This document shows, one piece after another, positions 5,500 to 53,094 of a stretch of 64,000 bases of DNA (position 1 is the stretch's first letter; the number at the start of each line of letters is the position of its first letter). The position numbers and the translations under genes were made by a program. The DNA is from Selaginella moellendorffii. Its lineage: Eukaryota > Plantae > Lycopodiophyta. The notes beneath the pieces are model-generated. The model had not been told where the DNA came from. It saw only the letters and a program-made list of their open reading frames with translations, and made no database searches. The stretch spans positions 776,897 through 840,896 of the forward strand of contig NW_003314306.1 of the NCBI RefSeq assembly GCF_000143415.4. Reading direction: 5' to 3'.

Positions 5500-7002
5500 T
5501 GCATGAAACCATGTTACATTGGTTGGATGACTTGCTAAGCGAGAGTGGCAAGTTAGGGGAACAAATCCCCTAGTTGAAGGTGCTAACTTCAAAAGGGGTG
5601 GCCTATGGGGCTAAGCATGGAGGGGTCTATGCATGATCATAGACTTGTCAAGTGAGAAGACTTGACAATTTGGAAGGACTAAGTTCCTAAGTTATGATCC
5701 GTAGCGCACTTTGGGTATAAATTGGTGCACCGGCGTGGGGAGTCACGCCAAGCATCCTAAGTGATGCTATCTGTAGATGCATATACGGAGGTTGGGTTCG
5801 AGTCCCAACCCTCTAGTGCTTGGGTTCGAGTCCCAAATCACTAGGGCGTCGTGATGGTTTGGAATATGAGGACACTCATATTTCGGTGGTCATGGACTCT
5901 TAATGAGGAGATTGGTTTGAGCACACCGCCAAGTGGGGGATGCCCCGGAGTCGTGATGCACAATTATATTGCTTAGAGTGAGAGTTTGGCATATCTAACT
6001 TTGGTGCAAAGGGCACCAAAGACGTGGTGAATGAGATGGGGACACCCAGTCTCAGTTGCTATGGATCTTTGGTCGGAAGGGCTGGCTTGGGTGCACTGCC
6101 AAGTGTGGGGGATGCCCCCGGGGTCATAGTCAACAATTTAAAAGGGTCTGGAAGACCTAGTCCCTATTGGCAAACCTATTAAGGGGTCAAGATGAGATCA
6201 CTAGGTGATCTTGTGGCTAAACAAGGACAAGGTATTTGTTTGGGTTAAAGAATATGATTCTTAGTTCAAAATGTTGATTTAAACTATTGATAATAGTGTG
6301 GCTTGGTCAAGGTGACTAAGTGGGAAGGACACCTAAAGGGAAATCAGTTGTGCCAATACGATGGTATAGTAAGTCCAAGAAAGTAGTTTCTATGAGAGAC
6401 TTATGGGAAGGTCGCAAAGTTGGGTCGTGGATGGAGCCCGTAGCAAAATATGCTACTACGAGTGAACACCCTCTAGACTTAGCAAAGTAGAGCCTTTGCC
6501 ATGGAACCAAAAGGACCACGAGCTTGGGCGGGAGGACAGTTTGAATGGTCACAATACCTACGATGGTATAATATTCTCTCAGAAATATGGTGTAAGATCG
6601 CACTGCGAGGATGGAAAATGGAGGTTGAGTACCTATAGTCTACTGGGGCTGCTAGAGCCATCATCCCCCCGCGCAGCCCGTCGAATGCCACCCCTTTTCT
6701 GCACACTGGCTTGCCGCAGGGGGGGTGCGGAGGAAGGCCTCTCCCTGGGCAATGGCTGCTGCTGCTACTGCTGCTGGACAATCGGCTGGGTGGTCGGAGG
6801 AAACGACTGTGTTGGGCATTGCACGAAAGAAAACGGATTCACCCCACTTGTCAAATGCCCTGTCCGTGCTGCTCGTCCCATGTTTCCTCGCAGGGGTCAG
6901 TGCGCACGACTTTCTATGGGGAGGCACCACAAGCAGCAGCGCTCGGACCAACTGGCGGGGAAGGACAACAACAACATGCCACCTTCTTCTTCTTCTTCTT
7001 CT

Positions 7003-7480
7003 TTGGGAATCCAAGTGAATCAATGCATAATGTAGGATTGGTTTGGGATGGAAAATTGCCATCTAATGCATTTGAAGCTGAGTATATCACTCTAACCATA
7101 GTATGCAAGGAACTTGTGTGGCTGAGATAGCTATTGAAGGACTTTGGGGCTGAGCAACTAGGTTGATATTCAAAGCAACATCACCATGATTTGCAATCCT
7201 GTTTTCCATGGGCACAACAAGCACATCCTTGTGCAATTTCACTATGTGAGGGAGCAGGTTGAAGCTAACATCATATGTGTTGACTACTTGTCGACTGGGA
7301 AGATGCTTGCAGATGTGCTGACAAAGCCTTTGGGACAGTCACAAGCTTGTCACCTTTCAGATGCAGCTTGGGATCCATTGAGTTTCCATCTTATGGGGGA
7401 GTGTTCAGATATAAGCTGGAACTCAAGTAACACTACACTAGGGTTTTTTCCTTTTGCACCTTTGAGTTTTCTCTAACAAA
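7003..7480 (+). mobile_element. Ty1/copia RNase H remnant with PPT and LTR start (duplicate of ~12162-12650)
   Basis: NPVFHGHNKHILVQFHYVRE...MLADVLTKPL is the typical copia RNase H end, followed by GGGGGAG|TGTT. Confidence 0.85.
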
Positions 7481-7542
7481 GATCAAGACATGAAAACCAA
7501 GTTAAGAATGGCAGAGAAAAAGGAACAAAAAATCACTAGTAT

Positions 7543-7826
7543 GCTTTATTTCGTTAAAGTGGGACTTTTCATTATCCCACTTATGGTGTGTGGCCACATG
7601 CCATTTTTATAACAACAATAAAAAATTGAAGTTTTAACTTTATAATTTATAAATTAAAAATTTTTCATATGATTTTGTGTTATAATATTGTGAAATATAA
7701 AAAAATAAATTAAAAAACTGATAGAAATATTAATAAATATTAATTAAGTACTAGGAAATGGCATGTGGACACATGCTAATTAATGTCCCACTTTACTGAA
7801 TAAATCCCACTTTAACGAAATAAAGC
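7543..7826. mobile_element. 284-bp AT-rich MITE of the same family as the 1-2084 and 62301-64000 elements
   Basis: 22-bp TIRs GCTTTATTTCGTTAAAGTGGGA. Flanks are ACTAGTAT and ATTAGTAT. The paralogous site at ~12705 is empty, with a single ATTAGTAT. Confidence 0.9.
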
Positions 7827-8803: not shown

Positions 8804-9990
8804 ATGCTATGGATGACTGGAGCAGGTTTTCACGGTGTTGGTGTTGGAGGTCTTGGCCTAGGTTCTCACGGTGTTGGTGCTGGAAGTCTTGGCTTAGGTG
8901 TTGGTGGAACTCTTGGCCCAGATTCTCATTGTGTTGCTGCTGGAAGTTTTAGACCAAGTGCTGGTGGAAGTCTTGGTGCAGATTCTCATGGTGTTGCTGT
9001 TGGAGATCCTGGACTAGGTGCTGGTGGAACTCTTCTTCCTAGAGCAGGTGCAAGCTCTCATTGTCTTGCTGTTGGTGGAAGTGGAAGCAGTGGTAGTGGA
9101 TCAAGTGTAGGAACTCTTGTTCCTAGTTTTGGAGCTACTGCAAGTTCTCATGGTGTTGCTACTAGTGTTCCTGGTGGAGGTATCATGAGTTTTGGTGGTC
9201 CAAGTGTTCGTGATCGACAATCCAATTGGACTCACGATGAAGTGATGGTGCTGATTCGGGAGAAGAGGATTGAGCTCGAACAATACAAAGGCACATCTGA
9301 TAGAGAGCGTATGGTTTGTTTGAAAGAGAAGTGGGAGAGGATCTCGGCACGGCTTCAAGTTGAAGGCTATGACAGGGATCCTGAGAAGTGTAGGATAAAA
9401 TGAACGAACTTGATGACTGTCTACAAAGCTGTCAAGCTCTATGATCATTCCACTGGCTGTGGCAATTACTTTGCGCTGACGACCAAGGAGCGAAGTGCTG
9501 CGAAGCTTAGAATTATTGAAAAAGAGGCTTTTGATGAGATTGACGAGTTTCTCTCTGCAAAGCCAAATATCACTCCAGCAAAGCTTCGTAACAATATCAG
9601 TCGTCCTCCTACAAGATCTGGTGGTTCTGGCAATGGTTCTCGTAGCAGCAACTTTGGCACAGGTATTGAAAACGAAGACAGAGGCACAGCAGAAGAAGTC
9701 CATAGTCCACTGCTGCAGCAGGAAAACTTAGGCAACAAAGAAGCTAGATCGACTGGCCGGGCAAAGAAGAAGGCAAGAAGGAGTGATCTCCTTGCATTAG
9801 CTGATGTCCTCAAGGAAGGGAATGAGGCATTGCTCAAGATGTTCACTGTTGCTGAAGAGACGAGATTGAAGCTGCATCAAGAGCAAATGGAGCTAGAGAA
9901 AGAGTCCATTCACCTTGAGCAAGATTGATTAGCCATGGAGAAGGAGACAAACCTTGGCATAACCACAGCTTTAGTTGCAATAGCATTGAC
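8804..9990 (+). pseudogene. Harbinger Myb/SANT-like (trihelix-type) DNA-binding protein with Gly-rich repeats; in-frame stops
   Basis: NWTHDEVMVLI...KWERISARLQVEGYDRDPEKCRIK*TNL, with TGA at the conserved Trp, then a C-terminal coiled coil. Confidence 0.8.
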
Positions 9991-10185
9991 CATTCAGCAA
10001 GGTAGGATAGATGCATTCATGTTAGATTTAATTGGTATTTTCCTTTCTAACAATCCTTTTTTGGTTAATAGGTTTGCATCGTTAGTGAGTCACTGGGGAA
10101 CAAAAAATAAAAACCTGAATAAAGATAGCTAGTAAGTATAGTTTATGTTCTTTTCTTTCTCAAAATGCTATTATATTTTCAGGAA

Positions 10186-10950
10186 ATGGATCCCCTTCAC
10201 CTTGTGTTGCTGGTCTTGGTTATATGCCACTGGATATCAATGCAAAAAAGGGATCAAGAGTTCCGAGTAAGGCAGCAACAAATAAAAAAGAAGAGAAGAC
10301 AAACTATAGATAGCTTAGTGGAAATGGATAGATAGGAGCAGAAACGACTGATGCAACTGCGGTCTTTTCACTCTCATGTTGTGGCTGCTACATCAAGTTC
10401 TCAACAACCACAACTAGAACGGATTTGGTGGGTGAAACCGCGATCAACAGTGTGGTTTGATAGGTTTGTGGATAGATACTATGATGATAAGCGGTGGAAG
10501 GAGAACTTTGGAATGAAGAAGCAAACTTTCAACAACTTGGTTGATTGTTTGCATGACTCAATTGTGAAGCAAAACACACACTACCGCATGGCTATACCAG
10601 TTCGTGTTCGTGTTGCATGTGCCATCTACAAGTTCCGGCATGGATCCAAGCTTCTTTCATTGTCTGAGAGGTTTGGGATTGGGAAGAGTACAGCATTTGA
10701 GGTTATCAAGGAGACATGTGCAGCAATTCTTGAAGTCTTTGCAGATGTGATCAAGTTTCCTACATCATCCTCAGATTTTAAAAAAGGTTATAGATGGATT
10801 CCAAGGGATTACAAAACTACCAAATGTTGCAGGGTGCATAGATGGATCACAAATAAAAATAGAAAGACCGTGGGATGATCCTGAGGTCTACTTCAAGCAC
10901 CATTGCTACAGCATCACGTTACAAGCCATTGTGGATAGTAATGGAATGGA
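10186..10950 (+). pseudogene. Harbinger (HARBI1-like) DDE transposase, frameshifted and truncated
   Basis: WWVKPRS..WF, WKENFGMKKQTF, AIPVRVRVA and FGIGKSTA, then GCIDGSQI in a shifted frame. Confidence 0.85.
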
Positions 10951-12650
10951 AAATTTAGTCACTTACAGGAAGACCTTTAAAGAGATATGGATAGAGAAGA
11001 AGCTAAATGTATCTCACTTTCATGTTTTTGGTTGTGCCACCTTCAAACATATCCCTAACTAACTATGCAGAATGCAATCACAAATCATACAAACTTTGGA
11101 ATTGGGCAACCAAGAAGATAATCATCAATACGAATGTGATCTTTGTCGAAGATAACTTCTCATAGTAGAGCCAAGGTGAATAACTATCCATTAGCTTTGT
11201 TAATGAAGATCTTTTAGTTCTTATATTCCCTTTTGGCTTCGAAGAGGATGCATTGATTGTTGATGAAGTGAGGATTGTTACCTTTGAGCATGATCCATTG
11301 AATGATGCTCAACTAGAGCTAACTCTAGTCCTTGAACTTGTTGGTCAGTAGCAAAATGCTTTATATCCTTGCTATTAGCAAGGAATGCCACATTTTGCAC
11401 CTCTAGTTAAGGGTCCACACATAAGAAAGCCCTCTTTAAAAGTTTTGGAAAATATCACATCTTTGCTCAACCAAGATGAAGTTGAGCTTTGCATATTTAT
11501 TGATGAAAATGTCCCCTCAACTTATGATAAAGCCATGGGTGGTTTAGAGTCTCACTTATGGACAAAGGCCATCAACAATCCTTTACTCAAGAATAACACA
11601 TTTATAAAATGTGGTTCATTGACTATAAATGGGTCTTTAAAAAGACATATAATGCTAATGGTAGTGCTCCTCACTACAAAGCATGCTTGGTTGCAAAAGA
11701 GTTAACACAAATATGAAGTGTGGGCTATAGCAAAACTTTCTCACCAATTGTCAAAATGGCTAGCATGCAAACAATCTTTGCGGTAGCAAATGCCCAGAGG
11801 TGGAAAGTTCACCAAATGGATGTGAAAATAATTTTTTTTAGTGATCTTAATAAAGACATCTTTATGCATACACCACCTGAGTTTCATAGCCATGAGATAA
11901 CATAAAAGCTCAAAAAAGCCTTCTATGGTTTCATGTGTTTAATATCAAAAGTTTGATGTGGCCTTGTGTTAAGAGGGCTTTTGTTATGCCTCAACAAACC
12001 TGAACATCTATATCAATGACAATTATGGCATCACTATAGCTTTTTCATTATATGTTGATGACCTCCTCATCATTGGGGGCAATGATAGTGTTATCTCGGC
12101 ACTAAAGGCATTTTTGGCTAAACATTTTCAGATGAAAAACCTTGGGGAAGTCAAAACATTCTTGGGAATCCAAGTGAATCAATGCATAATGTAGGATCCC
12201 TCTTGGAATGGTTTGGGATGGAAAATTGCCATCTAGTGCACGAGAAGTTGAGTATATCACTCTAACCATAGTATGCAAGGAACTTGTGTGGCTGAGATAG
12301 CTATTGAAGGACTTTGGGGCTGAGCAACTAAGTCAATATTCAAAGCAACATCACCATGATTTGCAATCCTGTTTTCCATGGGCACAACAAGCACATCCTT
12401 GTGCAATTTCACTATGTGAGGGAGCAGGTTGAAGCTAACATCATGTGTGTTGACTACTTGCCGACTGGGAAGATGCTTGCAGATGTGCTGACAAAGCCTT
12501 TGGGACAGTCACAAGCTTGTCACCTTTCAGATGCAGCTTGGGATCCATTGAGTTTCCATCTTATGGGGGAGTGTTCAGATATAAGCTGGAACTCAAGTAA
12601 CACTACACTAGGGTTTTTTCCTTTTGCACCTTTGAGTTTTCTCTAACAAA
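10950..12650 (+). mobile_element. Degenerate Ty1/copia pol (integrase end, RT, RNase H) with PPT
   Basis: TFSPIVKM, WKVHQMDVK, LYVDDLLI (~12048) and RNase H ADVLTKPL; many stops. Confidence 0.85.
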
Positions 12651-40963: not shown

Positions 40964-43629
40964 CTACCAGTAGCCTCCACAGCAGCACCTCCCATCCTCG
41001 AAAACATGGAACCTGTTCGTCTCCCTGCACAGAATCCGCCGCTCTTCTATCCGGGAGATCATGCAAGTCGCCCTGTGGCAGTCGTCGCAAGTTCTCAGGT
41101 TCTTCACGATCCGGACTGTCGCCCCCGGCGCAGTGTTGATAAGAGCACAGGCGATGGCGAGCCTCTCGCTATGCCCGCACAGGACATCCTCCTTGTCCTC
41201 GTCGGACGTGCTTCGCAGCACACTCCCCACGTCCGCGACGTATCCTTGCTCTTTCATGGCCACCAGGAGATCGTCCAGCTTCGCCCGGATCTCGTCAATC
41301 TGTGCGTGGCTAGAATCACCAGCCGAGAACTTATGCACCACTCCCGCGCTGTCCGTCCACCAGCTGCGACCCTGTCCAGGCTTTCTCCAAGCTCCAGCAC
41401 TGATCCTCATTGTCTCGATCCTGGCGTGCTCCTCCCACATTCCCAGGCTCCAGTATATCTGTTCCATCAGGATATAGACTCCAAACTCGGAGTCGTCCAG
41501 CTTCAGTAGATTCGCGAAAGCGAGCTCGCCAAGCACCACATTCTTCCACTTCCGGCAAGCACCGAGGACCGTCCTCCATGTCACCGCAGTCGGCTCGAAA
41601 GGCATCGATCGTATGAGTTGCACGGCAGCGTCCAGCTGGTTGGCACGGCAAAGTATGTCGAGCATGCAGTGGTGGTGCTCGAAGCCGGGAGAGACGCCAT
41701 ATCTGGAAGCCATCGAGCTGAAGAGACCCCGGCCTTTGCCCACGAGGCCGGCATAGCTGCAAACCGCGAGCACGCACAGCAAAGTCACGCTGTCCGCCTT
41801 GAAGCCTTCGTCCAGTATCTCGTGAAAGAGATGGAACACCTGGCTTGCCTCGCCTTGGCGGCTGTATCCTGCTATAAGCGTCGTCCATAGCACAATGTCC
41901 TTGGCGATGGAAACGTCGAAGACTCGTTGAGCAGCGTCCAGGCTCCCGCATCTCGCCAATGCGTCGACCATGGTGTTGGATAGAATCACGTCATTCTCGT
42001 AGCCACCTCTACAGACTTCACCATAGATGACCTTCGCGTTCTCGAGTGCCAAAACGCTGCCGCATGCTTTCAACACGGCCGCAAAGGTCCGAGCGTCGGG
42101 CTCGCATCCTCGAGGTCTCATACGCCGGAAGAGCTCCAAAGCCATCTCGCCTTCACCGTTCTCGGCGTATCCCAGCAGTAGCGTTGTCCACGAGACTGAT
42201 GTCTGGGAGGGAATGCTGTCGAAGACACGGTGAGCATCGGCCAAACTCCCACACTTCGCGTACAAGTCCACCAGCGTGTTGATGAAGAAGTAGTCTGCGC
42301 AGCCGCTTCCCTCGGCCTGCGAGTGAATCCGCATCCCCTTCTTCAGGCACTCGAGCTTCACAAGCTTCCCGTCGACTAGCTCGCCTTGCTCTTTCGCAGC
42401 CAGCTCGTTGATAGCATTTAGCGCCGCAACGAAAGTCCTGGCGTCTGGTGCGCAAGCTTCCGGCCTCATGCTCGAGTAAACCGCTAGAGCCATTTCACCA
42501 TCGCCATTCTCGACGTATCCCAGTATCAGCGACGTCCAGGAAACCACGCTGTGGCACGACATCCGGGAAAACACGCGGTGAGCGTCGGCCATGCTTCCAC
42601 ACTTGGAGTACATGTCCACAAGTGAGTTTGAGACGAACGTGTGTGTGTCACAGCCGAGCTTGGACGCTTCGCGGTGCACGGCCATTCCCTTTTCAAGTGA
42701 TTCCAGCTTCACCATCTTTCCAGTGACCAGCCTCCCTTGTTCTTTCGCTGCCAGCGTCATGCAAGCCTTGAGCGCCGCGACGCAAGTGAGGGCGTTTGGC
42801 TGGCAGCACTGCGCGATCATCCGGAAGAAATGCTCGAGAGCCACATCTCCTTCCCCGTTCTCAGCGTAGCCCAGTATCAAAGTCGTCCAGGACACCACGT
42901 CGTGGTGAGACATCCTGGAGAAGATCCTGCTAGCTTCTGTCATGTGGCCACACTTCGCGTAGAAATCCACGAGCGTGCTCGCGACGAAGATATCCGACTC
43001 CCAGCCGGCCTTGGAAGCCTGCGTGTGGATCGCGATCCCTTTGCCGAGAGACGCGATCTTCACAAGTCTTCCATCTGCTTGAGCGGTCCCTTCCTCTTTC
43101 CCGGCCAAGCGGATGCAAGCTTTGAGAGCAGCGATGTAGCTTCCACCGTTTGGAGAGCAGCCGCTAGACTCCATCCTCGAGAAGAGCTTGAGAGCAGCGT
43201 CTTCTTCTCCCTGTGACGCATAGCCCAGTAGCAGGGAGTTCCAGGAGACCACGTCTCGCGACTGGATCCTATCGAACACCCGGCGAGCCTCCACCAAGCT
43301 CCCACACTTGGCGTACATGTTTACCAGGCTGTTTGCCACGAAAACGTTGGAATCGTAGCCCCTTTCCATGGCCTGCGCGTGAACTCTCTTCCCCCTCTCC
43401 AGATTCTTGGCGCTCGCGCACGATCGCAATGCCGCCAGCACCGAGAAGACGCTGCTCGCTTCCGCCTTGTCGTGCCGAGAGCCAACCACGATTTCACATA
43501 CCGCGGCATTCTGCAAGAAAAATCGCTCGGATCGAATCTCGGACCGGAAATCCTCACACTTACATGATAGAATCGCAATGCGATCCAGCGCCAGCTCCTG
43601 CGTGATGAGCGCCTGGAGAGATAGCGCAT
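40964..43629 (-). CDS. PLS-DYW PPR RNA-editing factor, with exon 1 encoding a likely mitochondrial presequence
   Basis: HSERLA...KNLRTCDDCH...CCCGGYW. MRYLSRRSSRRSWRWIALRFYH|GTAAGT..TTGCAG|NAAVC splices in frame. Confidence 0.92.
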
Positions 43630-43794
43630 TTCGCGCGAGATAGAAACGAAACAAACGTTTCCTCCATAGCCACGAAGAGCCCTAGATTTGGTGCGAATAT
43701 CCTCTAGCTATCCAACGGCGAGGATGGGGTCCATATAATCTTCTTTCTCCCTGCATGGTTAGGGCTAGGTTTAGGGTTTGCTGAGAGGGATCCG

Positions 43795-46700
43795 ATGGAT
43801 CAGTGGAATTTGCGCACGGCCGCGGCTCACTTCGGCCACTTGACGCAACAGGTTTGTGTTCTCGCGATTCTCAGCTGGAATTTCCATCATGTTTCTCTCT
43901 CGAATCCTATAGAGCGCGCAGAGTGGCTCGGCGCAATACTCGTACACCTCGGGCGCTTACGCGGGGCAGCAGCAGCCACAGCAACAGCAGCAGCAGCAGC
44001 AAGCACCATCGTCTGGCAGCGCTGCTTACAATCAAGCGTACCTCCAGCAGGTAAATTCCCCCAAAATCTCGCCAAATTCGCTTGGTTTTTTCTTGGCCTT
44101 CCCATTGTTCTTGGCCTTTTCTTTCCTTCTTCTCGGCTCTTAATGGCTTGGTTTTCCAGGTAGCACAAGCCGGCTATAACACTTCCTCCTACGGAGGCCA
44201 GCAATTGTGGTCGACGAGACAAGCCCAAGGCCAGCAAGCGGACCAGCAATCGCAAGCCGCCTATGGAAGTCGCGTCGGAGGCGTCGCCCAAGTCCCCTCA
44301 AGCGGCACCGCGTCGGCAAATCAGTACGCTGGTCAATACTATGGAGTGTCGCAGCAACAGGTAACTCCATCCTTGACGCTCCATGCATGGTCTTGTCTGT
44401 GGCTTGGCATCACTGCACGGTGTTCTTCCGGAATACTACATGCTTTGGTAGTCAAGCTCACAACTTTGCGTCCTTTGTGTTGGAAGTTTGGCGTTAAACA
44501 TTGTAAACCGATTCTCAGCCGCATCCCGTTGCCTTTGCTTCCCACCGTTTGGTTTTCTTTTCTGCTCGTTTGTCCTTGCTTTTTCTATTTTTTCGTCTTC
44601 GTGTTGCTGATCAAGAGACTTGGTGGCCTCTGTGGGGGCAGCTTCTGGGAGTAGCTTCCAAGGCGTCGGACTACCAGGCCTCGGGAGGAGCGGCTTCCAG
44701 GACGTCAAGTGCTTACGGCAATGGCGGTCAAGATAGGCCTGTTAGTGGAACCTCTTATGTTGGCGGCGGCGGAGGTGGCGGTGGCGGCGTCTCGTCAGTG
44801 AGCGTCTCGGGAGTCTATGGCGGCGCCGCTGACTCCGCCAAGTATCTCTCGGGTGGCGGCGGTGGCGGCGGTGGTGGTGGCGGATATGGGACGTCAGCAG
44901 GCAACCAGTACGGTGGCCAGAAATCTTCGAGCGATCAGTACGCTACGACCGCCGCGGCGTATCAGGGCGTCAAGTCGTCCGACTATGCGAGCCAGTTCTA
45001 CGAGCAGTTCCAACAAGGTGATTCAAACAAGGATCAACTTGAAAGTTTTTTTCTCCGGTTTACGTGTGGTTCCTACTCGTTTTCTTCTATTTCTTCTCCT
45101 TTTTTTTCTTTCTTGAGACTTGAGACCTCTAACTTGGTAGTGCAGTTGCTCGAGCCGCGGCTGCCACTGGAGGATATGGAAGCAGCGGGACCGGTGATGC
45201 GTCGGGTCTGCTCGCCAGCTTAGGTGGTGCTGTGGCGGCGATGCCGGGAGGGAACTTATCGGGCCAGCAAGCCAGTAGCGCGTATGGTTCTCTGTCCGGG
45301 AGCCGAGGACTCAACACCCCGCAAGTATACCCGGCCAGCCCGACTATCGGCTATGGAGGTGTGAGCTTACCACCCGGCAGAGACTATGGAACTGGCAGAA
45401 TCTCGACAGGGGGCTCCATGTTCCAACGTGAAGGAAGCTACGGTCGGTCCGAGAGGCCGAGCATTGGGAGCAGTAGATTCGACGATCGGTCGCGGGACCA
45501 TGAGAGAGACGTGGAGCGCGAGCGGGAACGAGAAAGGGAACGAGAACGCGATCGCGAGCGTGAAAGGGAGCAGCGGGAGCGAGAACGGAGGGAGAGGGAG
45601 CGGGAAAGGGAGCGGAGGGAGGAAGAGAGGCGAAGAGAACGAGCGAGTCCACCGCCTCCGCGAGCGAGGAGGGAGTCATCGCCATCGAGGAGGGACGACA
45701 AGAGTAGAAGAGAGTCTCCTCGTCGAGAGTCGGGTTCTCATAGGTACTACTACTGCTACTACTGCTGGCTTGCTTTGCATGGCTCATTGTCCTTGTTCTA
45801 CTCACAAGTTTGCTTTTTCTTCTTTGGTTTTGCTAATGTTTTTTCCAGGCATTCTTCTCCGTCCAAGGACAAGAGACGGGAGTACCTGTGTAGAGTAAGA
45901 TGGTTGATTGATTTATGACTTTGGGATCTAAGATTGTTCCTTTCCAGATCGACAGCAACAACGTGCTTGAAGCTGAGCGAGACTATAACTCGATCACTAA
46001 GCGCTACACGAGGCTGTCCGTCGTGCCAGAGTTTTCTAAGGTTTATTTCTATCTTTCTTCTAGACTGGTGTGATAATATGTTTTGATGTTGTTTTTAGCT
46101 AGTTCTGTCTTGGATGGGGAAGGAGGACAAGATTCTCATCGAGAGGCCTATCAGGTTTGTCTTGCTTGTGCTTTACGTGGAGTAACTTTCTATGTTTTGA
46201 CAGCTTTGAGCACGATTGTATTGATGTGGAAGAGGAGGCTGAGACGAAAGAAACCACGAAATCTAGCGATAAGATTCAAAAAGGATCCACCGTGTGGAAT
46301 GTGAAGGTGATACATGAATACTTTTTAGTTTTTGTCCTCCACGCGTAATGGTTCTTTTGTTCCTGCAACACAGGTGATGCTCATGAGTGGTTTAACAGAA
46401 GAATATGTCGCAGACCTCCTTTCGGACAAGCCTAGTGACAAGCCTACAAGCTTCCAAAAGATGCTGAAGTTTGTGGCCTTGCGGAAAGATCGAAATGCGA
46501 TTATGGCCGCTGGTACGCGGTGGGATAAGTCTCTCGATGGTGGCGATCCAACTGTGGATGATAGCGGTCTAATTAGAGCTGCCGTGAGAAGTTTGAAAGA
46601 ACTGATCCAGCTCGACTTGTCCGAGTGCAAAGATTGGTTTCGCTTTGCTGAGGTACGCACGAGTTATTTTCTTTTTTACTTCTCTTTCTTGAGTATGTTC

Positions 46701-48297
46701 CTTCTTCAGGTACATTATGAAAGAGTGGACGAAGATGGCTTTCCAAGTCACAGAGAGATCAGTGTCATTTTCTTCCCTGATATGTCCTCGTGCGTTCCAT
46801 CTTTTGAGAATTGGTGCTTGCAATGGAATCAGAGAAAGCAGGCTAAGCTTGAGAGAGAAGGACAAAGCAAGAAGGTATTAATTTCTATGCTGATAATGTC
46901 ACTTATTCTTTTTTCTTTTTTTTTTGTGTGTGTAGGAGGTCAAGCCGAGCGAAAAGAAAGACGCAGCTGAGAAAGAAAGTAAGTTCATTTCAACATGCTT
47001 TTAAAGAACATAACGCTGGCGTATGTGAGCAGGCATAAGCGAGGGGACCCCAGAGACAGACGTGAACAATGGCGAGCCTGTTGCTGCTAAAGAGGAAGAA
47101 AAGAAAGAGAAGGAAGAGAAAAAGGAGAAAGATCCGCCCAAAGATAGCGAGGTTAAGAAGGATGAAGCTCCAGAGCACCCAGGATTCTTATTGATGACGA
47201 AGCGCACTAAAGCCAGCAAGGTTTCTTCGTTTTTCCTACTCATTTTGTGCGACTTACAAGGGTTATTATACAGTTACGTTCCATGACAATTTCTCTGGAC
47301 GGGCTTCTTGACTACGACGAGAATGACAAGGACGAATGCACATTTGAGGTATGCTGTTTGTGCTTCATTGCTACATGCTACAATTGTTGTTGCAGCTGTC
47401 ACTATTCGCTGAGGCGTTTGCGGAGATGATCCAGTTTAGAAAAGGAAGCCAGATTCTAGCCAGCTTGGAAGTAAGAGTCCTAGAAACTTTCCCTAAAATG
47501 TTTTTGAGCTTTGTTGGTCTCTTTCAGAACTTGCGTAGGACTAGCCATACTCGTAGAAAGGAAGAGAAGAAGCGTAGCCGGCAAACAGAATCTGGAAACG
47601 ACGCGAAACGGGTCAAGATGGAGCAAACCGCAAAGGCTGCAGAAGAAACTCCCAAAACAGAGGAAGAGAAGCAACCCGTGGCCGACGCTATGGAGGAAAC
47701 TCTCAAACCGGAAAAGGAGAACGAAGACACTGAAAGCGAGGCAAGGGCCGTCACTCCTCCAACCTCTGAAGCCAAAGAAGCCAAGGAGACGAAAGAAGTA
47801 AATGAAGGAGAACAAGACGAGAAGAAAGAGAAGAACGGCAGCGGTAAGAAGGACAAGGACAAGGATCCCAGCAGCAAAAAGGAGAAGAAAGTGGTGGTGG
47901 ACAAAGAGTTACTCAAGGTGAGCGCTTTGCTTCCTCGTCAAAGATTTCACATTCCCGACCTGTGTCTTGTTCACAGGCGTACAGATACTTCGACCGGAAC
48001 AAAGTTGGCTATCTAAAGGTATGCTTCCTCTCTCGCTCTCTTCTTTTTTTTTGTTCCAGTCTTGAGCTCGCGTTATTCCAGGCAGAGGATCTTAGAAAGC
48101 TGCTACATTCACTGGGGAAATTCCTGTCGCAGAGAAACGTTAAGGTAGTCTCTGTATTATTGCAGCGTCTGTGTGATTTTTACTTTGGTGTTTTGCAGGA
48201 CTTGGTGAATGGAGCTGTGCTAGAAAGTGGTAAAGCAAGAGATGAGAAAGTCATGTACCGGAGCCTTACGGACAAAGAAGCGGTGGCTTCGTCTTAG
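43795..48297 (+). CDS. CCAR1: CCAR1-like protein (Arabidopsis RSA1/EMB1579 homologue): Q/G/S/Y-rich N-terminus, RE repeats, DBC1 domain and EF-hand
   Basis: VMLMSGL, SLDGGDP...LIRAAVR, WFRFAEVHYER, ISLDGLLDY...TFELSLFAE and AYRYFDRNKVGYLK. Confidence 0.88.
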
Positions 48298-48349
48298 GTG
48301 ATTCTGTTATAGGGTGATCGATTGCAGATTATCCTTCCAGGAAATCCCG

Positions 48350-48370
48350 AAACCCTAAACCCTAAACCCT
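48350..48370 (+). repeat. (AAACCCT)3 telomere-type/telo-box repeat
   Basis: Seen directly, ~50 bp after the CCAR1 stop codon. Confidence 0.85.
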
Positions 48371-48989
48371 CACACGGATTAGGGCTTTCCTGTAGCATAG
48401 AAGAAACGATTGCTATCCAAAATACCTTCAGAAGTCGTGGACCACACTAGTTTGCGGTTTCTCCCGCGTTGGAGATGTTAAATCTGCCGAGGAGTGCTTC
48501 AAGGGAATGCCATTTCGGAACTTGGTTTTGTGGAACTTTTAGATTTAAATTTGTGATGCCATATGTTAATATTAGCATAGTAGGTTTTTAGTAGCCATTA
48601 AATTGGTTTTAGTAGATGCACATTTTTTATATTTCTTTTCTATATTCCATGAGTTTTTTCCATTTCATTTATTTTGTTCTTTTCTTTTGGGATTTTGGTT
48701 TAAATATAATTTTTGCATTGTTTAGATCTCCCTTTCCTTTTAGTTTTTTTCATTTCTTTTTTTTTTGCTTTTTTTATTATGCTATGTGATTGCAATTAAA
48801 TAATCAAACTTAGTTAATGGTAATATTCACAACACGTGGTACTAGTCTGTCTCCTCAATGTATGTCACTACATACTCATCTGTGGCTTGTAAACATCCCT
48901 GGACACAAAAAACCGCAATGTGAGCAAACACTCGCACTGTAAACATGAGAAATCACCTGATGAAAATAGAACAAGATCTCATTTCCATA

Positions 48990-49434
48990 GTTAGGAACCT
49001 CTTTCCTATTGATCAACAAAACTGGTGCTAACCTGAGGTCAAAGGAAACATCTTGGAGTTCCTAACAAGGAATATGTGCACGTCCATATCTCCAGCAGTG
49101 TAGACCCATCCGTCATGAACGGTAACTGTTAACCCTCGTAGCCAGAAACACTATGGAACTGTAGTGCCTTCGTCCACCCTAACCATAAAAATCAAACTCA
49201 CCTTTGAAAGCCAGCTTCCAGAGCAGACTTGATGTCCACTGCTGAAGGCTTCGTCCAGTGCATCGAGTATAGAATTGACTGATTCGCAGATTCACAACCA
49301 GAAGAAGACATACCTGGACCAGTGCCCTCTCGATCGTTTCCCACATAAGCATCATGAAGTGCAGCAATCGTGAGAGCTACATGTTGCCTGTGTGTGTCAG
49401 GATTGAAGGGCCCTTGAACCGCGTAATACTCCAT
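48990..49434 (-). pseudogene. Possible decayed PP2C-like phosphatase remnant
   Basis: DIKSALEAGF and LTVTVHDGWVYTAGDMDVHIFLVRNSKMFPLTSG loosely resemble PP2C motifs. Stops are present and the catalytic motifs are not intact. Confidence 0.3.
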
Positions 49435-49698
49435 TGCGCACAAAAACTGTAACATTTGGTGCACACAGCATGTATACTCTGCATTAGGGTTTCTGGATTG
49501 AGATGGCAAGTTGCAAGATTCAATTGCAAGTTGCAATTGAATTGCAAAATAGATTGCAAAATTGCAAAATTTAATTGCAAAATAGAAAATGTTGAGGCCT
49601 GGTTTTTTGTATTCAAATCTTTCTCTTCAGTCCTGATAAGTATTCCAAATGCAGAACCGGAGGAGGTGAAAAAGCAGTAAACACGAGTACTATTTAGT

Positions 49699-52008
49699 TC
49701 ACATATAGCTAGACGTCTGGGACAGCTTGTAGGTATACTTGCTGCTGCAATAGAAACTCAAGGCGCAGCATATGACGAAGGCTATAGTTTCAGAGACCAA
49801 GGCGGCCACCAAAATGTCTTGGATCCCATCATCACTTATAGGATGAGCAATATTTGTCAGAACTGGTGGATCAGCAGCAAAACACTTGGTTGGAAGTGGC
49901 AAGCCACAAAGTTCAGGATTTCCTTCAAAGCTTCCTCCTGTGAAAGTAAAAAACTGTCCGCTTTGTGGAATACGGCCAGACAAGTTGTTGTACGAGACAT
50001 TGAAGAGAAACAGGAATGTGAGCTGCGAGAGCGAAGCGGGTATACTTCCATGCAGAGCATTCTCTGATAAATCCAGGACTTGCATACCCTCAAGGTTGCC
50101 TAGAACTTCAGGAATCCGGCCACTGAGATTGTTGTGTGCAACATCCAAGATCAAAAGACTGCGCATGAGTCCAATTTCTTCAGGAATCTCTCCACTCAGC
50201 TGGTTATAAGAAAGCTGAATGATGAGCGGGCTGCTGATGTTCAACACGTAAGGTGGATTAATGTTCAAGGGAGCAAAGCAGCCAGTCCTTGCAAACAAGT
50301 GCCGCTCAAGATCATGAAGACGGATCCCGTGTACAATGAAGAGCATGTTACTGCCTTTGCATATGGGACCAGGTGTTCGTGCAACTACATACATGCTGTC
50401 AACAATAGACCCGGTTATTTCAACTCCGCTGAACTTGCGACCAATTCTACCAGGTAGTTTTCCACTGAACGAGTTGCTTGCAAGCTCCATCACGTACAAA
50501 CTCTTGGATCCATCCATTTCTTTAGGAATTTCACCCTCTAAGGAGTTGTTGGTCAGCTGCAGACAGACCAAGTTATCTAGCTCCCCAAATGAAGATGGTA
50601 TCTTTCCAGTCAGATAGTTGCTACCTAAGCTTAGCCACCAGAGTTTGTGCAGACCAGATAGCTGAGTAGGTATGCTGCCATTGAGATTATTGTGACTGAG
50701 AAGAATAGTACTCAAGTTGACGCAGTTACCCAAGGTTGACGGAATGGATCCCTGGAGGCCATTCCCCCAAGCATGTAAATGCTGCAGCTTAGGAAGGCTG
50801 CTGCATAGCTGGTCGGGTATTCCTCCAGTTAACTCATTAAAACTCACATCTAGCAACTGCAACCTTCGGCAGTCGACTAGAGAGTCTAGTAGTGGACCGG
50901 TCAACCTGTTATTAGGCAGGAGCAAGTTCCTTAGCTTTGAATCAGTGGGACAGATGTTGCTGCTTGTTTTGGTGAACATGTTGGAGCTGAAATCCAAGTG
51001 CTTCAGATTCGCATGGAATTTGGGTAATTCACCTGTGAACGAGTTGTAGCTTGCGTCCAGAACTTCAAGAGACGAGTGTAGTTCCAAGTTCTTAAGCCCC
51101 AACGACAATAAAGGCGGCCCTGAGTAGAAGTTACTAGAGATATTCAGCACTTTGAGTGAAGAGCAAGTTGAATCGCTGCTGTTGAAGATATTTCCAGAAA
51201 GTCTGTTGTAAGAGACATCTAGATGTGTCATGTTGAGACATGGAACTGCTAGCTCGCTCAGAGAATTTGATGCAAGAATAAGCCGCTGAATGGTGTTGGA
51301 GTTTGAAAACTCTAATGCCTCGAAAAAGTTGTTGCTTGCTAGATTGACATCCTCTAGAACGGGGCAGTGGGTAACCATCTGCGCTGGAACACTTCCAGCA
51401 AATTCATTGTTTGAAAGATTGAAGTAGTGCAGGCTGTTACAACTTTGGAATAGGGAGGATGGAACTGTGCCATTGACGTTGTTGTTTGAAAGGTCGAGTG
51501 TCTCCAGTGTCCTGCCAATCACAGAATTGGATCCAAGTTCACCATCAAGCTGGTTATGGGAGAGATTTAGCAGCCGTAATGAGTTTTTGCAGTGGAGCAC
51601 AAGCTCTGTAGGAAAACTGCCTCGTAAGATGTTGTTAGACAAGTCAAGTACCTCCAAATCACAGCCTGGCAAACTTAAATTGCTGCTCAATGGTTCTGCA
51701 AATTGGCTCCTTGAGACGTGCAGCTGACGGAGGTGAGACAGCATCTGGATTGTCAATATCAGTAAATCGGAACTTGGTAGTGTTAAAGATTGAAGATGGA
51801 GCCCTATGACTCGGCCTTGTTGTGAGGAACAATCCACGCCTTCCCACTCGCAACAACTCACAGTCTTGTTCCAGCCTCTCAATGTTCCCAGTGGATCTCT
51901 GACACCATGTTTCAGCCGTAACAGTGCTGCTGCTGAATCAACTGATGAAATGGCCTTCCCATCGACAACCGTCATAAACACGATGAGAAGGAACAGGAGG
52001 GAGAACAT
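49699..52008 (-). CDS. LRR receptor-like protein (signal peptide, LRRNT, ~20 LRRs, island domain, C-terminal LRRs, TM, short tail) with a BRI1/BRL-like ectodomain
   Basis: 769-aa single-exon ORF with CEWEGVDC cap, an island domain, GNPELCG..L..C cap, a TM helix and a ~16-aa cytoplasmic tail. Confidence 0.9.
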   Translation of the reverse strand: MFSLLFLLIVFMTVVDGKAISSVDSAAALLRLKHGVRDPLGTLRGWNKTVSCCEWEGVDCSSQQGRVIGLHLQSLTLPSSDLLILTIQMLSHLRQLHVSRSQFAEPLSSNLSLPGCDLEVLDLSNNILRGSFPTELVLHCKNSLRLLNLSHNQLDGELGSNSVIGRTLETLDLSNNNVNGTVPSSLFQSCNSLHYFNLSNNEFAGSVPAQMVTHCPVLEDVNLASNNFFEALEFSNSNTIQRLILASNSLSELAVPCLNMTHLDVSYNRLSGNIFNSSDSTCSSLKVLNISSNFYSGPPLLSLGLKNLELHSSLEVLDASYNSFTGELPKFHANLKHLDFSSNMFTKTSSNICPTDSKLRNLLLPNNRLTGPLLDSLVDCRRLQLLDVSFNELTGGIPDQLCSSLPKLQHLHAWGNGLQGSIPSTLGNCVNLSTILLSHNNLNGSIPTQLSGLHKLWWLSLGSNYLTGKIPSSFGELDNLVCLQLTNNSLEGEIPKEMDGSKSLYVMELASNSFSGKLPGRIGRKFSGVEITGSIVDSMYVVARTPGPICKGSNMLFIVHGIRLHDLERHLFARTGCFAPLNINPPYVLNISSPLIIQLSYNQLSGEIPEEIGLMRSLLILDVAHNNLSGRIPEVLGNLEGMQVLDLSENALHGSIPASLSQLTFLFLFNVSYNNLSGRIPQSGQFFTFTGGSFEGNPELCGLPLPTKCFAADPPVLTNIAHPISDDGIQDILVAALVSETIAFVICCALSFYCSSKYTYKLSQTSSYM

Positions 52009-53094
52009 GGTAGGACTCTCACTCAGCCACAGAAAAAACCTAGGCTAGTTGAAACAAAGGTATCCAAGTGACCTGATTATGAAAAACCTTAGGCTGCAGA
52101 AAAACTAGACTTGTCTATAGGTGACTTGACTTCACGACTTTGCTTGTTTCAGCGATTTTGAAAACTTTATTATTCGTACTTTAAAATTCTAGAATTTTAA
52201 AGCACTCATTTAAGCTTGTAATTTTTGTCAAGGCCTTACTTTCAATCACTTGCATTCCATTACAATTTGGGATTGCACGCATTTGCATTGCAAATGCTCG
52301 ATAGATAAACTACTTTGTCTAAGACTATGAATCCTAATACTATAGAAAAGATTTATATAAGCACAGATTTTAGAAGTCAAGTCAATTTTGAGAAGTTAAG
52401 TCAAGTCATGTCTTGGCCACGGCAGCCCATTTTGTGTGGTGTTGATGGTTTGATTTTTGGCTTTTTGGCTTGATGTGGAGATTTTTGACATATTGATGGC
52501 TTCTAGTTGCCATGAGAGAGGGTTGCAGCTGTCCCTATTGACAAAATTAATACTGGCTGTTGATGTATACTGGCTCATGCAGGAGTATAGATACCGCATC
52601 AGTTGTCTTGAGTCACATACTTTCTGAAATCCTGTTTAGCCTTCTTGAAATAAAATTTGGACATAGCCTAAGTAACTCATAAAAGAAATTTCACCACCCA
52701 ATGGTCAGTCATATTTCCTGTTTAGAAATGAGAAACAACTGGAATGAAGCTCATTGTGCTGCTTGTCCCAATAATGCAAAGAGCAGTTATCAAGTTGAAT
52801 CCCATGCTAGGCTCTTAAGTATTAACAGTCTGCTCGGAACAAACAGACACCTCAGTTAGAGCAATCACTTGCATTGCATTACAATTTGGATTGCACACAT
52901 TCTATCATTCTGCTTTTTGACCTTGCTACAGCAGCCATAGATACTCAACACATGATACCTCAAGCAGAACTTACACATGGAATTTGGAACGTTTGAAGCA
53001 GAAAGTTTTGATGCTCTATTAAGCTAGGCCAAGCAAAACAAAGTAAGACAAAGGAATAGAATTGTGAGAGAAAATGAAGGGGTCTGTGGATTAT

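Follow-up and report, generated by a model that had tools for sequence, protein, structure and literature searches.

The closest described relatives of the gene reported here are BRI1, BRL1, BRL2 (VH1), and BRL3, which form group Xb of the leucine-rich repeat (LRR) receptor-like kinases (RLKs). According to a 2026 review, brassinosteroid (BR) receptors that have ligand-binding domains are confined to seed plants. Selaginella nevertheless makes BR-like compounds and elongates on BR according to the literature, and its BR responses have been reported together with the lack of a functional BRI1 homolog (Cheon 2013, PMC3862569). No BR receptor homolog was found in S. moellendorffii (Zheng 2022, PMC9223546), and a 2023 oak study that searched Selaginella for BRI1/BRL-like sequences retrieved only EMS1 orthologs. 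These published surveys were framed around receptor kinases. Here, we describe a gene at positions 49699-52008, on the minus strand, of a 64-kb stretch of Selaginella moellendorffii DNA (contig NW_003314306.1; the whole stretch is hereafter called the window), which encodes a kinase-less LRR receptor-like protein (RLP). Contrary to the literature, a BRI1/BRL-type ectodomain with an island domain is present in a lycophyte, and only as a kinase-less form. In openly searchable full-text literature, subscription-only papers aside, we found no mention of kinase-less BRL-like genes in lycophytes. An earlier sequence-only reading of the window had described S. moellendorffii as BR-responsive yet reported to be without a canonical BRI1, and the published record agrees.

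Among other receptors, RLPs of the Cf-9/EIX2/RLP23/RXEG1 type resemble the encoded protein in their overall plan, with LRRs, an island, four further LRRs, an acidic stretch, a transmembrane helix, a short tail, and no kinase, and island-bearing RLPs also resemble its family in their birth-and-death behavior, with tandem and broken copies. PSKR1 and PSY1R share the LRR ectodomain and the island, which is again separated from the cap by four LRRs, and known members signal in a SERK-dependent manner. EMS1/EXS, which published searches return from Selaginella as the nearest relative of BRI1, likewise has a long LRR ectodomain and belongs to the same RLK superfamily; according to the literature, its kinase is able to replace that of BRI1. 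With BRI1 and the BRLs, the protein shares a collinear leader, LRRNT cap, and approximately 21 LRRs (in one stretch for BRL2), as well as 35-38% ectodomain identity. Another shared element is the 70-aa island, which precedes the C-cap by four LRRs and carries the Cys pair, Leu615, and GIR motif known from these receptors. Unlike them, it has no juxtamembrane or kinase domain and belongs to a lycophyte-only clade. We hold it probable, with moderate confidence, that the gene is a member of a Selaginella-specific family of kinase-less RLPs whose ectodomain comes from the BRI1/BRL lineage.

Architecture and ectodomain affinity

The open reading frame (ORF) is unbroken in the ORF listing and encodes 769 amino acids (aa) followed by a stop. 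The product is a type I membrane protein in which a leader, LRRNT cap, approximately 21 LRRs, a 70-aa island, four LRRs, C-cap, acidic stretch, transmembrane helix, and short tail follow one another (Table 1). Its probable signal peptide was assigned from the hydrophobic sequence and the alignment with BRL3. A Pfam scan of the 769-aa protein matched LRRNT_2 and LRR families only and detected no kinase and no island family. Across the whole 64-kb window, tblastn with four BRI1/BRL kinase domains revealed no kinase-coding DNA, the best match (E 0.11) lying on the opposite strand, 24 kb from the receptor gene. In assembly GCA_000143415.2, the locus is found on scaffold GL377610.1, where the deposited gene model spans just the last 510 aa, from Met260.

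The RNA data led to the same result. Four sequencing runs were mapped to window positions 47100-52900, three of them kept as contigs (X1, X5, and X17) and the fourth as raw RNA reads (X24). The three sets of contigs are RNA-derived because, in them, a neighboring plus-strand gene has lost its introns, six GT..AG introns of 47-63 nucleotides (nt). They cover the receptor gene from 49177/49593 to 51916/52047, with nothing past 52144 and a gap toward the neighbor. In these three runs, no contig joined the receptor transcript to any further exon, the ends falling between 49177 and 49593, and to the extent of these RNA data this rules out a spliced kinase. A downstream kinase exon was rejected on the tblastn result, the convergent neighboring gene, and the RNA contigs stopping in the 3' untranslated region (UTR). 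Within the data examined, the receptor gene is kinase-less at both the DNA and the RNA level. The intact kinase-less ORF that had been read from the letters alone was thus recovered in full, including the quoted island string and the four LRR motifs.

Sequence searches placed the ectodomain beside BRI1 and the BRLs. In phmmer searches against the PDB, BRL2 aligned in one stretch over query residues 21-707, BRI1 over 256-709, and BRL3 over 356-723, all through the island, whereas the best stretch of PSKR1 covered just residues 591-704, within the last LRRs. The nearest proteins in a protein collection were kinase-less S. moellendorffii proteins of 650-800 aa, which carry the automatic RefSeq names BRI1, BRL2, or BRL3, followed by angiosperm BRL2 proteins, whose 35-38% identity extends across the full length. 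When blastp was scored on single high-scoring segment pairs (HSPs), the Selaginella paralogs and BRI1/BRLs reached 288-451 bits (BRI1/BRL family HSPs, 288-379), and all other proteins reached at most 229 bits. A length-window control used a 585-aa piece of the query so that full-length BRLs fall outside the searched lengths; at 37-40% identity, it returned only truncated, PF20141-bearing BRLs, and its top 120 matches held no PSKR and two PSY1R-named proteins. A search with aa 470-769 was uninformative for relatives, the best 150 matches being giant multi-LRR proteins that score via many repeats.

Structural comparison pointed in the same direction. The AlphaFold2 (AF2) model of the whole protein had a predicted local distance difference test (pLDDT) score of 84.8 and a predicted template modeling score (pTM) of 0.80. 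When this model was searched with Foldseek, ranks 1-22 were all BRI1, BRL1, BRL2, or BRL3 chains (E 1e-45 to 1e-36), followed by MIK2, HSL1, and FLS2 at approximately 1e-32, with PSKR1 at rank 41; BRI1/BRL chains were also the top matches for the island segment. The model of that segment (aa 440-715) superposed on BRI1, BRL1, and BRL3 with template modeling (TM) scores of 0.81-0.86 (root mean square deviation 3.1-3.7 Å, approximately 280 columns), compared with 0.55-0.60 on PSKR1 and 0.65-0.69 (deviation approximately 10 Å) on the RLP RXEG1. The superposition lends fold-level support to the assignment, not proof.

Ectodomain-only trees were built from representatives of each named group, taken from approximately 490 fetched proteins. 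A 52-taxon quick tree and a careful 38-taxon maximum likelihood (ML) tree (751 columns, LG+C20 with posterior mean site frequencies, PMSF) agreed with each other. In the ML tree, the kinase-less Selaginella proteins form one clade (support 100/100), seed-plant BRI1, BRL1/3, and BRL2 form another (100/99), and the two clades are sisters (100/99). The Selaginella proteins, which sit on long branches, are therefore a sister lineage to seed-plant BRI1/BRL and are not nested inside it. Two PSY1R-like ectodomains, checked to be collinear with PSKR1, fall with generic EIX/Cf-type RLPs among the outgroups. The approximately unbiased (AU) test rejected a clade of Selaginella and PSY1R-like proteins (delta lnL 22.0, p 0.014) as well as one of Selaginella proteins and six generic RLPs (delta lnL 47.2, p 1.2e-5). 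The possibility that the grouping is an artefact of the island columns was rejected because support by the Shimodaira-Hasegawa-like approximate likelihood ratio test (SH-aLRT) was still 99 after their removal. Adding an EMS1-like ectodomain (P0452) also left the grouping at 99, with the added sequence among the outgroups. A profile search with seven Selaginella sequences brought up no additional relatives from lycophytes, ferns, or bryophytes and yielded this EMS1-like outgroup.

These results set the protein apart from the other systems with which it shares its general plan. Cf-9/EIX2/RLP23/RXEG1-type RLPs differ from it in showing only 26-34% identity, grouping with the outgroups, and being rejected as a joint clade. 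PSKR1/PSY1R differ in the shorter island, the alignment of PSKR1 over the last LRRs only, its low Foldseek rank, and the rejected joint clade. P0452, the single EMS1-like sequence compared, scored 213 bits at 32% identity, fell into the outgroup polytomy, and has no PF20141 island. That the ectodomain is of the BRI1/BRL type, and not of the PSKR, EMS1, or generic RLP type, is supported by its collinear alignment, by the phylogeny and its AU tests, and by the fold ranking of both the whole model and the island segment. On this point the sequence-only reading held up, both in the tree and in the fit of the modeled island to that of BRI1.

Island domain and steroid pocket

Structural work on the BR pocket (PMC13481262) reports that Trp564 is essential; W564H cuts brassinolide (BL) binding approximately 100-fold and phenocopies the null. 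According to the same source, ligand orientation for SERK recruitment depends on Tyr599, Tyr642, and Lys601, bri1-6 is the Gly644Asp allele, Leu615 does not vary, and BRL2, long thought to be non-binding, binds BL at approximately 200 nM. In our alignment A1, all of the 49 seed-plant BRI1/BRL sequences carry Trp564, Leu615, Tyr642, Gly644, and both Cys residues; positions 599 and 658 are always aromatic and position 601 always basic.

The window protein keeps BRI1 Tyr597 (as Tyr540), Cys609 (Cys550), Leu615 (Leu556), Gly620-Ile621-Arg622 (Gly561-Ile562-Arg563), and Cys635 (Cys577), and has Arg544 in place of Lys601, as in BRL3. Unlike in BRI1 and the BRLs, Trp564 is replaced by Val506, Tyr599 by Val542, Tyr642 by Ile583, Gly644 by Pro585, and Phe658 by Ile596; further replacements are Gly643 by Asn584, His645 by Pro586, and Phe681 by Leu619. 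Only Leu615 is retained among the six tested pocket positions (564, 599, 615, 642, 644, and 658). No Gly occurs between Cys577 and Ser600 of the window protein, and the loss of Gly644 is therefore independent of the alignment register. Neither Trp564 nor Gly644 is retained in any of nine Selaginella sequences, and position 564 is V, Q, H, D, M, or T across the paralogs. Within the family, Phe557 and Pro585 do not vary across seven Selaginella sequences. The Pfam family PF20141 (Brassinosteroid receptor island domain, gathering score 23.6 bits) gave no match at E<=10 on the window island, whereas in the same scan it scored 74.5 bits on BRL2, 106.7 on BRI1, and 12 on the best Selaginella paralog. 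A blastp comparison with BRL2 islands detected weak collinear similarity (E 0.002-0.1, 125-sequence set). The island had been placed at approximately 50225-50450 and was mapped to 50221-50445, and its Cys pair and GIR motif align with those of BRI1, as had been proposed. The fold-determining island scaffold (Cys pair, Leu615 equivalent, and GIR) is conserved and the steroid-contact set is not.

The earlier reading had gone further and suggested a non-canonical BR sensor that signals through a partner kinase. In such a sensor, a reshaped groove would bind castasterone-type steroids and signal via SERK and a partner kinase, thereby explaining a BR response without BRI1. Several observations are consistent with this suggestion, including the elongation on BR of a plant reported to be without BRI1/BRL, the BRI1/BRL lineage of the ectodomain, the superposing island fold, and the retained Leu615, Lys601 equivalent, Tyr597, and Cys pair. 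The BR pocket also tolerates many substitutions, as the BL binding of BRL2 illustrates, and its high plasticity, stressed in PMC13481262 (2026), means that the loss of consensus residues does not prove the loss of steroid binding. However, the residue whose single replacement by His is so damaging in BRI1 is Val here and variable among the paralogs, the two tyrosines needed for SERK recruitment are Val and Ile, the Gly644 site has no Gly, and none of the nine Selaginella sequences restores Trp564 or Gly644. The PF20141 profile does not match, and the locus is weakly expressed and partly mis-spliced. The pocket residues predict no canonical BR binding by the window protein, which is probably not a classical steroid sensor, and this part of the earlier reading, which we consider highly improbable, was not upheld. 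We regard as very remote the wider idea that the family is the missing perception module for BR, a lycophyte steroid, or another small hydrophobic hormone, acting through a reshaped pocket with the Phe557/Pro585 signature, SERK, and a separate kinase. If true, it would represent a split-receptor form of steroid sensing, either older than the fused receptor kinase or a substitute for it.

Splicing, allelic variation, and the Selaginella family

The gene had been described as single-exon. The ORF is indeed continuous in the DNA, but a 46-nt intron inside it (an exitron) is spliced out in the RNA of two of the three assembled runs, with the join 51605>51652 present in the X5 and X17 contigs and the X1 contig unspliced. 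The exitron begins directly after codon 119, with GT following GAG, and ends in a pyrimidine tract and AG; it codes for part of a normal LRR that can be aligned with BRL3, and the other haplotype has the identical exitron. We rejected a genomic deletion allele as the source of the skip because one approximately 98% identical allele has the 46 nt in some runs and lacks them in others, the borders show GT..AG and a pyrimidine tract, and the 46 nt are present in the DNA of the other haplotype. Removal of the exitron shifts the frame and leads to a stop after 131 aa. In the spliced RNA, the following long ORF begins at Met211 and has no leader, and the 769-aa RLP can therefore come solely from intron-retaining RNA. 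RefSeq protein XP_024521174.1 (other allele, 564 aa, named BRASSINOSTEROID INSENSITIVE 1) corresponds to the Met211 ORF (559 aa) plus a 5-aa insertion; it fits the spliced form, though the model also begins downstream of the first ATG.

The second haplotype (GL377687.1) carries an intact 774-aa ORF that differs from the window allele by 22 substitutions and a 5-aa insertion after residue 536. All RNA contigs of the receptor gene come from an allele approximately 98% identical to the window, with a 15-nt in-frame insertion behind 50401. Comparison of the two haplotypes (Nei-Gojobori) revealed 19 synonymous and 23 nonsynonymous differences, with a ratio of nonsynonymous to synonymous divergence (pN/pS) of 0.37 and a synonymous excess over the neutral expectation (binomial P 0.0014). 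Codons 1-210 count as coding only when the exitron is kept; for them, pN/pS was 0.39 on just 9 differences (P 0.15). The coding sequence has no frame-breaking indel between the haplotypes, its single indel being in frame, and the flanks have many indels. The ORF is under purifying selection between the haplotypes. The gene is thus neither untranscribed nor evolving neutrally, the two outcomes that would have undermined its earlier description, albeit with weak and partly unproductive expression. One protein with 66% identity (P0002) was rejected as a paralog, as it proved to be an old, mis-modeled version of the other haplotype's allele.

Our tree resolved five Selaginella loci, namely the window gene, P0009, P0004/P0122/P0045, P0006/P0123, and P0124/P0125/P0007, most of them with two haplotype alleles, and the family size is at least five loci plus broken copies. 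The proteins end 10-25 aa after a transmembrane helix preceded by an acidic patch, except for one model with an alternative C-terminus that has no transmembrane helix. No RLK-kinase coding DNA was found within +-10 kb at three paralog loci. Every member is kinase-less, and the kinase loss therefore predates the expansion of the family. As a separate observation, the P0124 and P0007 models have an alternative C-terminus of approximately 28 aa without a transmembrane helix, while the allele P0125 is normal; a secreted isoform or a modeling difference is possible.

The absence of a kinase also raised the possibility of a decoy, the alternative named in the earlier reading, or of a negative regulator. 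Such a protein would produce no signal itself but would sequester a SERK-type co-receptor or a ligand, keeping it from receptors that have a kinase. A kinase-less protein with a tail of approximately 12 aa and an ORF under purifying selection would suit such a role, and the best conserved region is the last four LRRs with the C-cap, which face the co-receptor in BRI1-type receptors. However, Selaginella has no kinase-bearing BRL to compete with, every Selaginella match being kinase-less, and at least five diverged paralogs with differing pocket residues suit diversified recognition better than one decoy role. We find a decoy distinctly unlikely.

In the reading we favor, that of a kinase-less RLP family with a BRI1/BRL-lineage ectodomain, the groove formed by the island and LRRs may still bind a ligand, one other than castasterone or BL. 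The conserved last four LRRs would recruit a SERK-type co-receptor, as they do in BRI1, PSKR1, and island-bearing RLPs, and the output would depend on a partner kinase. The full-length protein may stay at a low or conditional level owing to exitron splicing and low expression. In known RLPs, a GxxxG motif in the transmembrane helix is the SOBIR1 interface. The helix of the window allele has no GxxxG and contains Glu740; some Selaginella paralogs have Gly-rich helices.

Several points weigh against this reading. Its signaling part is drawn by analogy with known receptors throughout, and the pocket plasticity described above tempers the exclusion of BR-type ligands. The modeled island has pLDDT values of 45-85, or 45-68 for the segment that was superposed, and folding relied on a multiple sequence alignment made up of BRL sequences, so that the model may lean toward the BRI1 fold. 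In the tree, BRLs from ferns, bryophytes, and lycophytes other than Selaginella are lacking, a single sequence stands for the EMS1-like type, and two stand for the PSY1R-like type. The frame-breaking splice is carried by two of the three RNA assemblies, and X24, of which 12% was read, yielded zero reads on the receptor gene at a neighbor depth of 36-170, from which expression is taken to be low or conditional. Expression of the receptor gene is weak or conditional, and part of its RNA is spliced unproductively. The charged Glu740 in the transmembrane helix of the window allele (SNP 49790 T>C) is Gly in the other allele and in at least 90% of the A1 rows. The closest paralog, P0009 (GL377569.1, RefSeq "BRL2"), is interrupted in its island and split into ORFs of 562 and 159 aa, and a tandem copy located 2 kb upstream of P0004, itself intact at 749 aa, is fragmentary, with ORFs of 166 and 558 aa. 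The family therefore gains and loses copies, and its members do decay.

Much of this would also fit a locus on its way to becoming a pseudogene, with low transcription, mostly unproductive splicing, and little or no functional protein. The splice found in most RNA assemblies, the leaderless RefSeq model from M211, the lack of X24 reads, Glu740, and the broken state of the nearest paralog and of the tandem copy elsewhere could all be read in this way. However, both haplotypes retain the full ORF (769 and 774 aa), free of stops and frameshifts amid indel-rich flanks, pN/pS is low over the whole ORF and, on few differences, in its N-terminal 210 codons, and the unspliced transcript is present in X1. 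Pseudogenization of the window locus is therefore unlikely in our judgment, and we retain the kinase-less family of BRI1/BRL descent as the preferred reading. With regard to the two broken copies themselves, the P0009 locus lies at 9878-12072 of the fetched GL377569.1 piece, where the RefSeq model omits half of the island and one LRR and is leaderless; the locus may be a decaying copy or contain a real intron. The tandem copy lies at 5597-7770 of the fetched GL377594.1 piece.

Features of the locus and significance

Table 1. Features of the receptor gene, in window coordinates
Feature	Position	Strand	Evidence
Full ORF, kinase-less LRR RLP with BRI1/BRL-type ectodomain	49699..52008	-	ORF, Pfam, PDB and protein searches
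Probable signal peptide, aa 1-17, hydrophobic N-terminus	51958..52008	-	Sequence; aligns with BRL3 leader; AF2 helix 2-12, low pLDDT
LRRNT_2 N-terminal cap, aa 26-61	51826..51933	-	Pfam PF08263, E 1.1e-9
46-nt GT..AG intron inside ORF (exitron)	51606..51651	-	RNA contig joins 51605>51652 in X5, X17
Val506 codon, position of BRI1 Trp564 in LRR core	50491..50493	-	Alignment A1
Island domain, aa ~522-596	50221..50445	-	Alignments, AF2 model, superposition
Site of 15-nt in-frame insertion (5 aa after residue 536) of other haplotype	50401..50402	-	RNA contigs and second haplotype DNA
Four C-terminal LRRs, aa ~595-700, then capping Cys pair C701/C709	49909..50226	-	PDB alignment, A1, AF2
Transmembrane helix, aa ~732-757, Glu740 codon 49789-49791	49738..49815	-	Hydropathy, C-terminal comparison, AF2 helix 729-765
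Cytoplasmic tail, ~12 aa, without kinase	49702..49737	-	ORF, Pfam, tblastn, C-terminal comparison
3' UTR as far as RNA contigs reach	49177..49698	-	X17 contig 49177-51584; X5 contig from 49593

Two further genes lie nearby in the window. The convergent plus-strand neighbor (43795-48612, ending at approximately 48.4-48.6 kb) is well expressed and was modeled as a 1036-aa protein with a Lys/Glu-rich C-terminal part, and this model has no Pfam match. It has at least six GT..AG introns of 47-63 nt, with joins at 47218/47272, 47346/47394, 47470/47528, 47915/47975, 48016/48080, and 48142/48197, and 3 nt at 47627 are missing from 58 of 119 RNA reads, probably owing to an in-frame allelic indel in a charged repeat. 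The called genes of the locus identify an 896-aa ORF at 40964-43654 on the minus strand as that of a PPR protein with a DYW deaminase domain.

Some minor features of the sequencing data were also recorded. The X17 RNA allele of the receptor gene has 13 nt missing in the 3' UTR at 49560, and an X17 contig of low depth skips 59 nt with non-canonical borders (CC..CA) at 48896-48956, in the intergenic stretch; the skip probably reflects an assembly or allelic difference. Runs under two other organism codes (B and C) contain approximately 40% of the sampled words of 49699-52008 at near identity, like the organism A runs, and may be from the same species.

The family provides clonable candidates for testing BR sensing in Selaginella. 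Because of its exitron and low expression, the window locus is a poorer candidate for such tests than the intact, normally modeled paralogs P0004, P0006, and P0124/P0125. The presence of a BRI1/BRL-type ectodomain in a lycophyte corrects the gene-presence map used for dating the origin of steroid perception, and the family offers a natural case of a BRI1-lineage receptor turned receptor-like protein.

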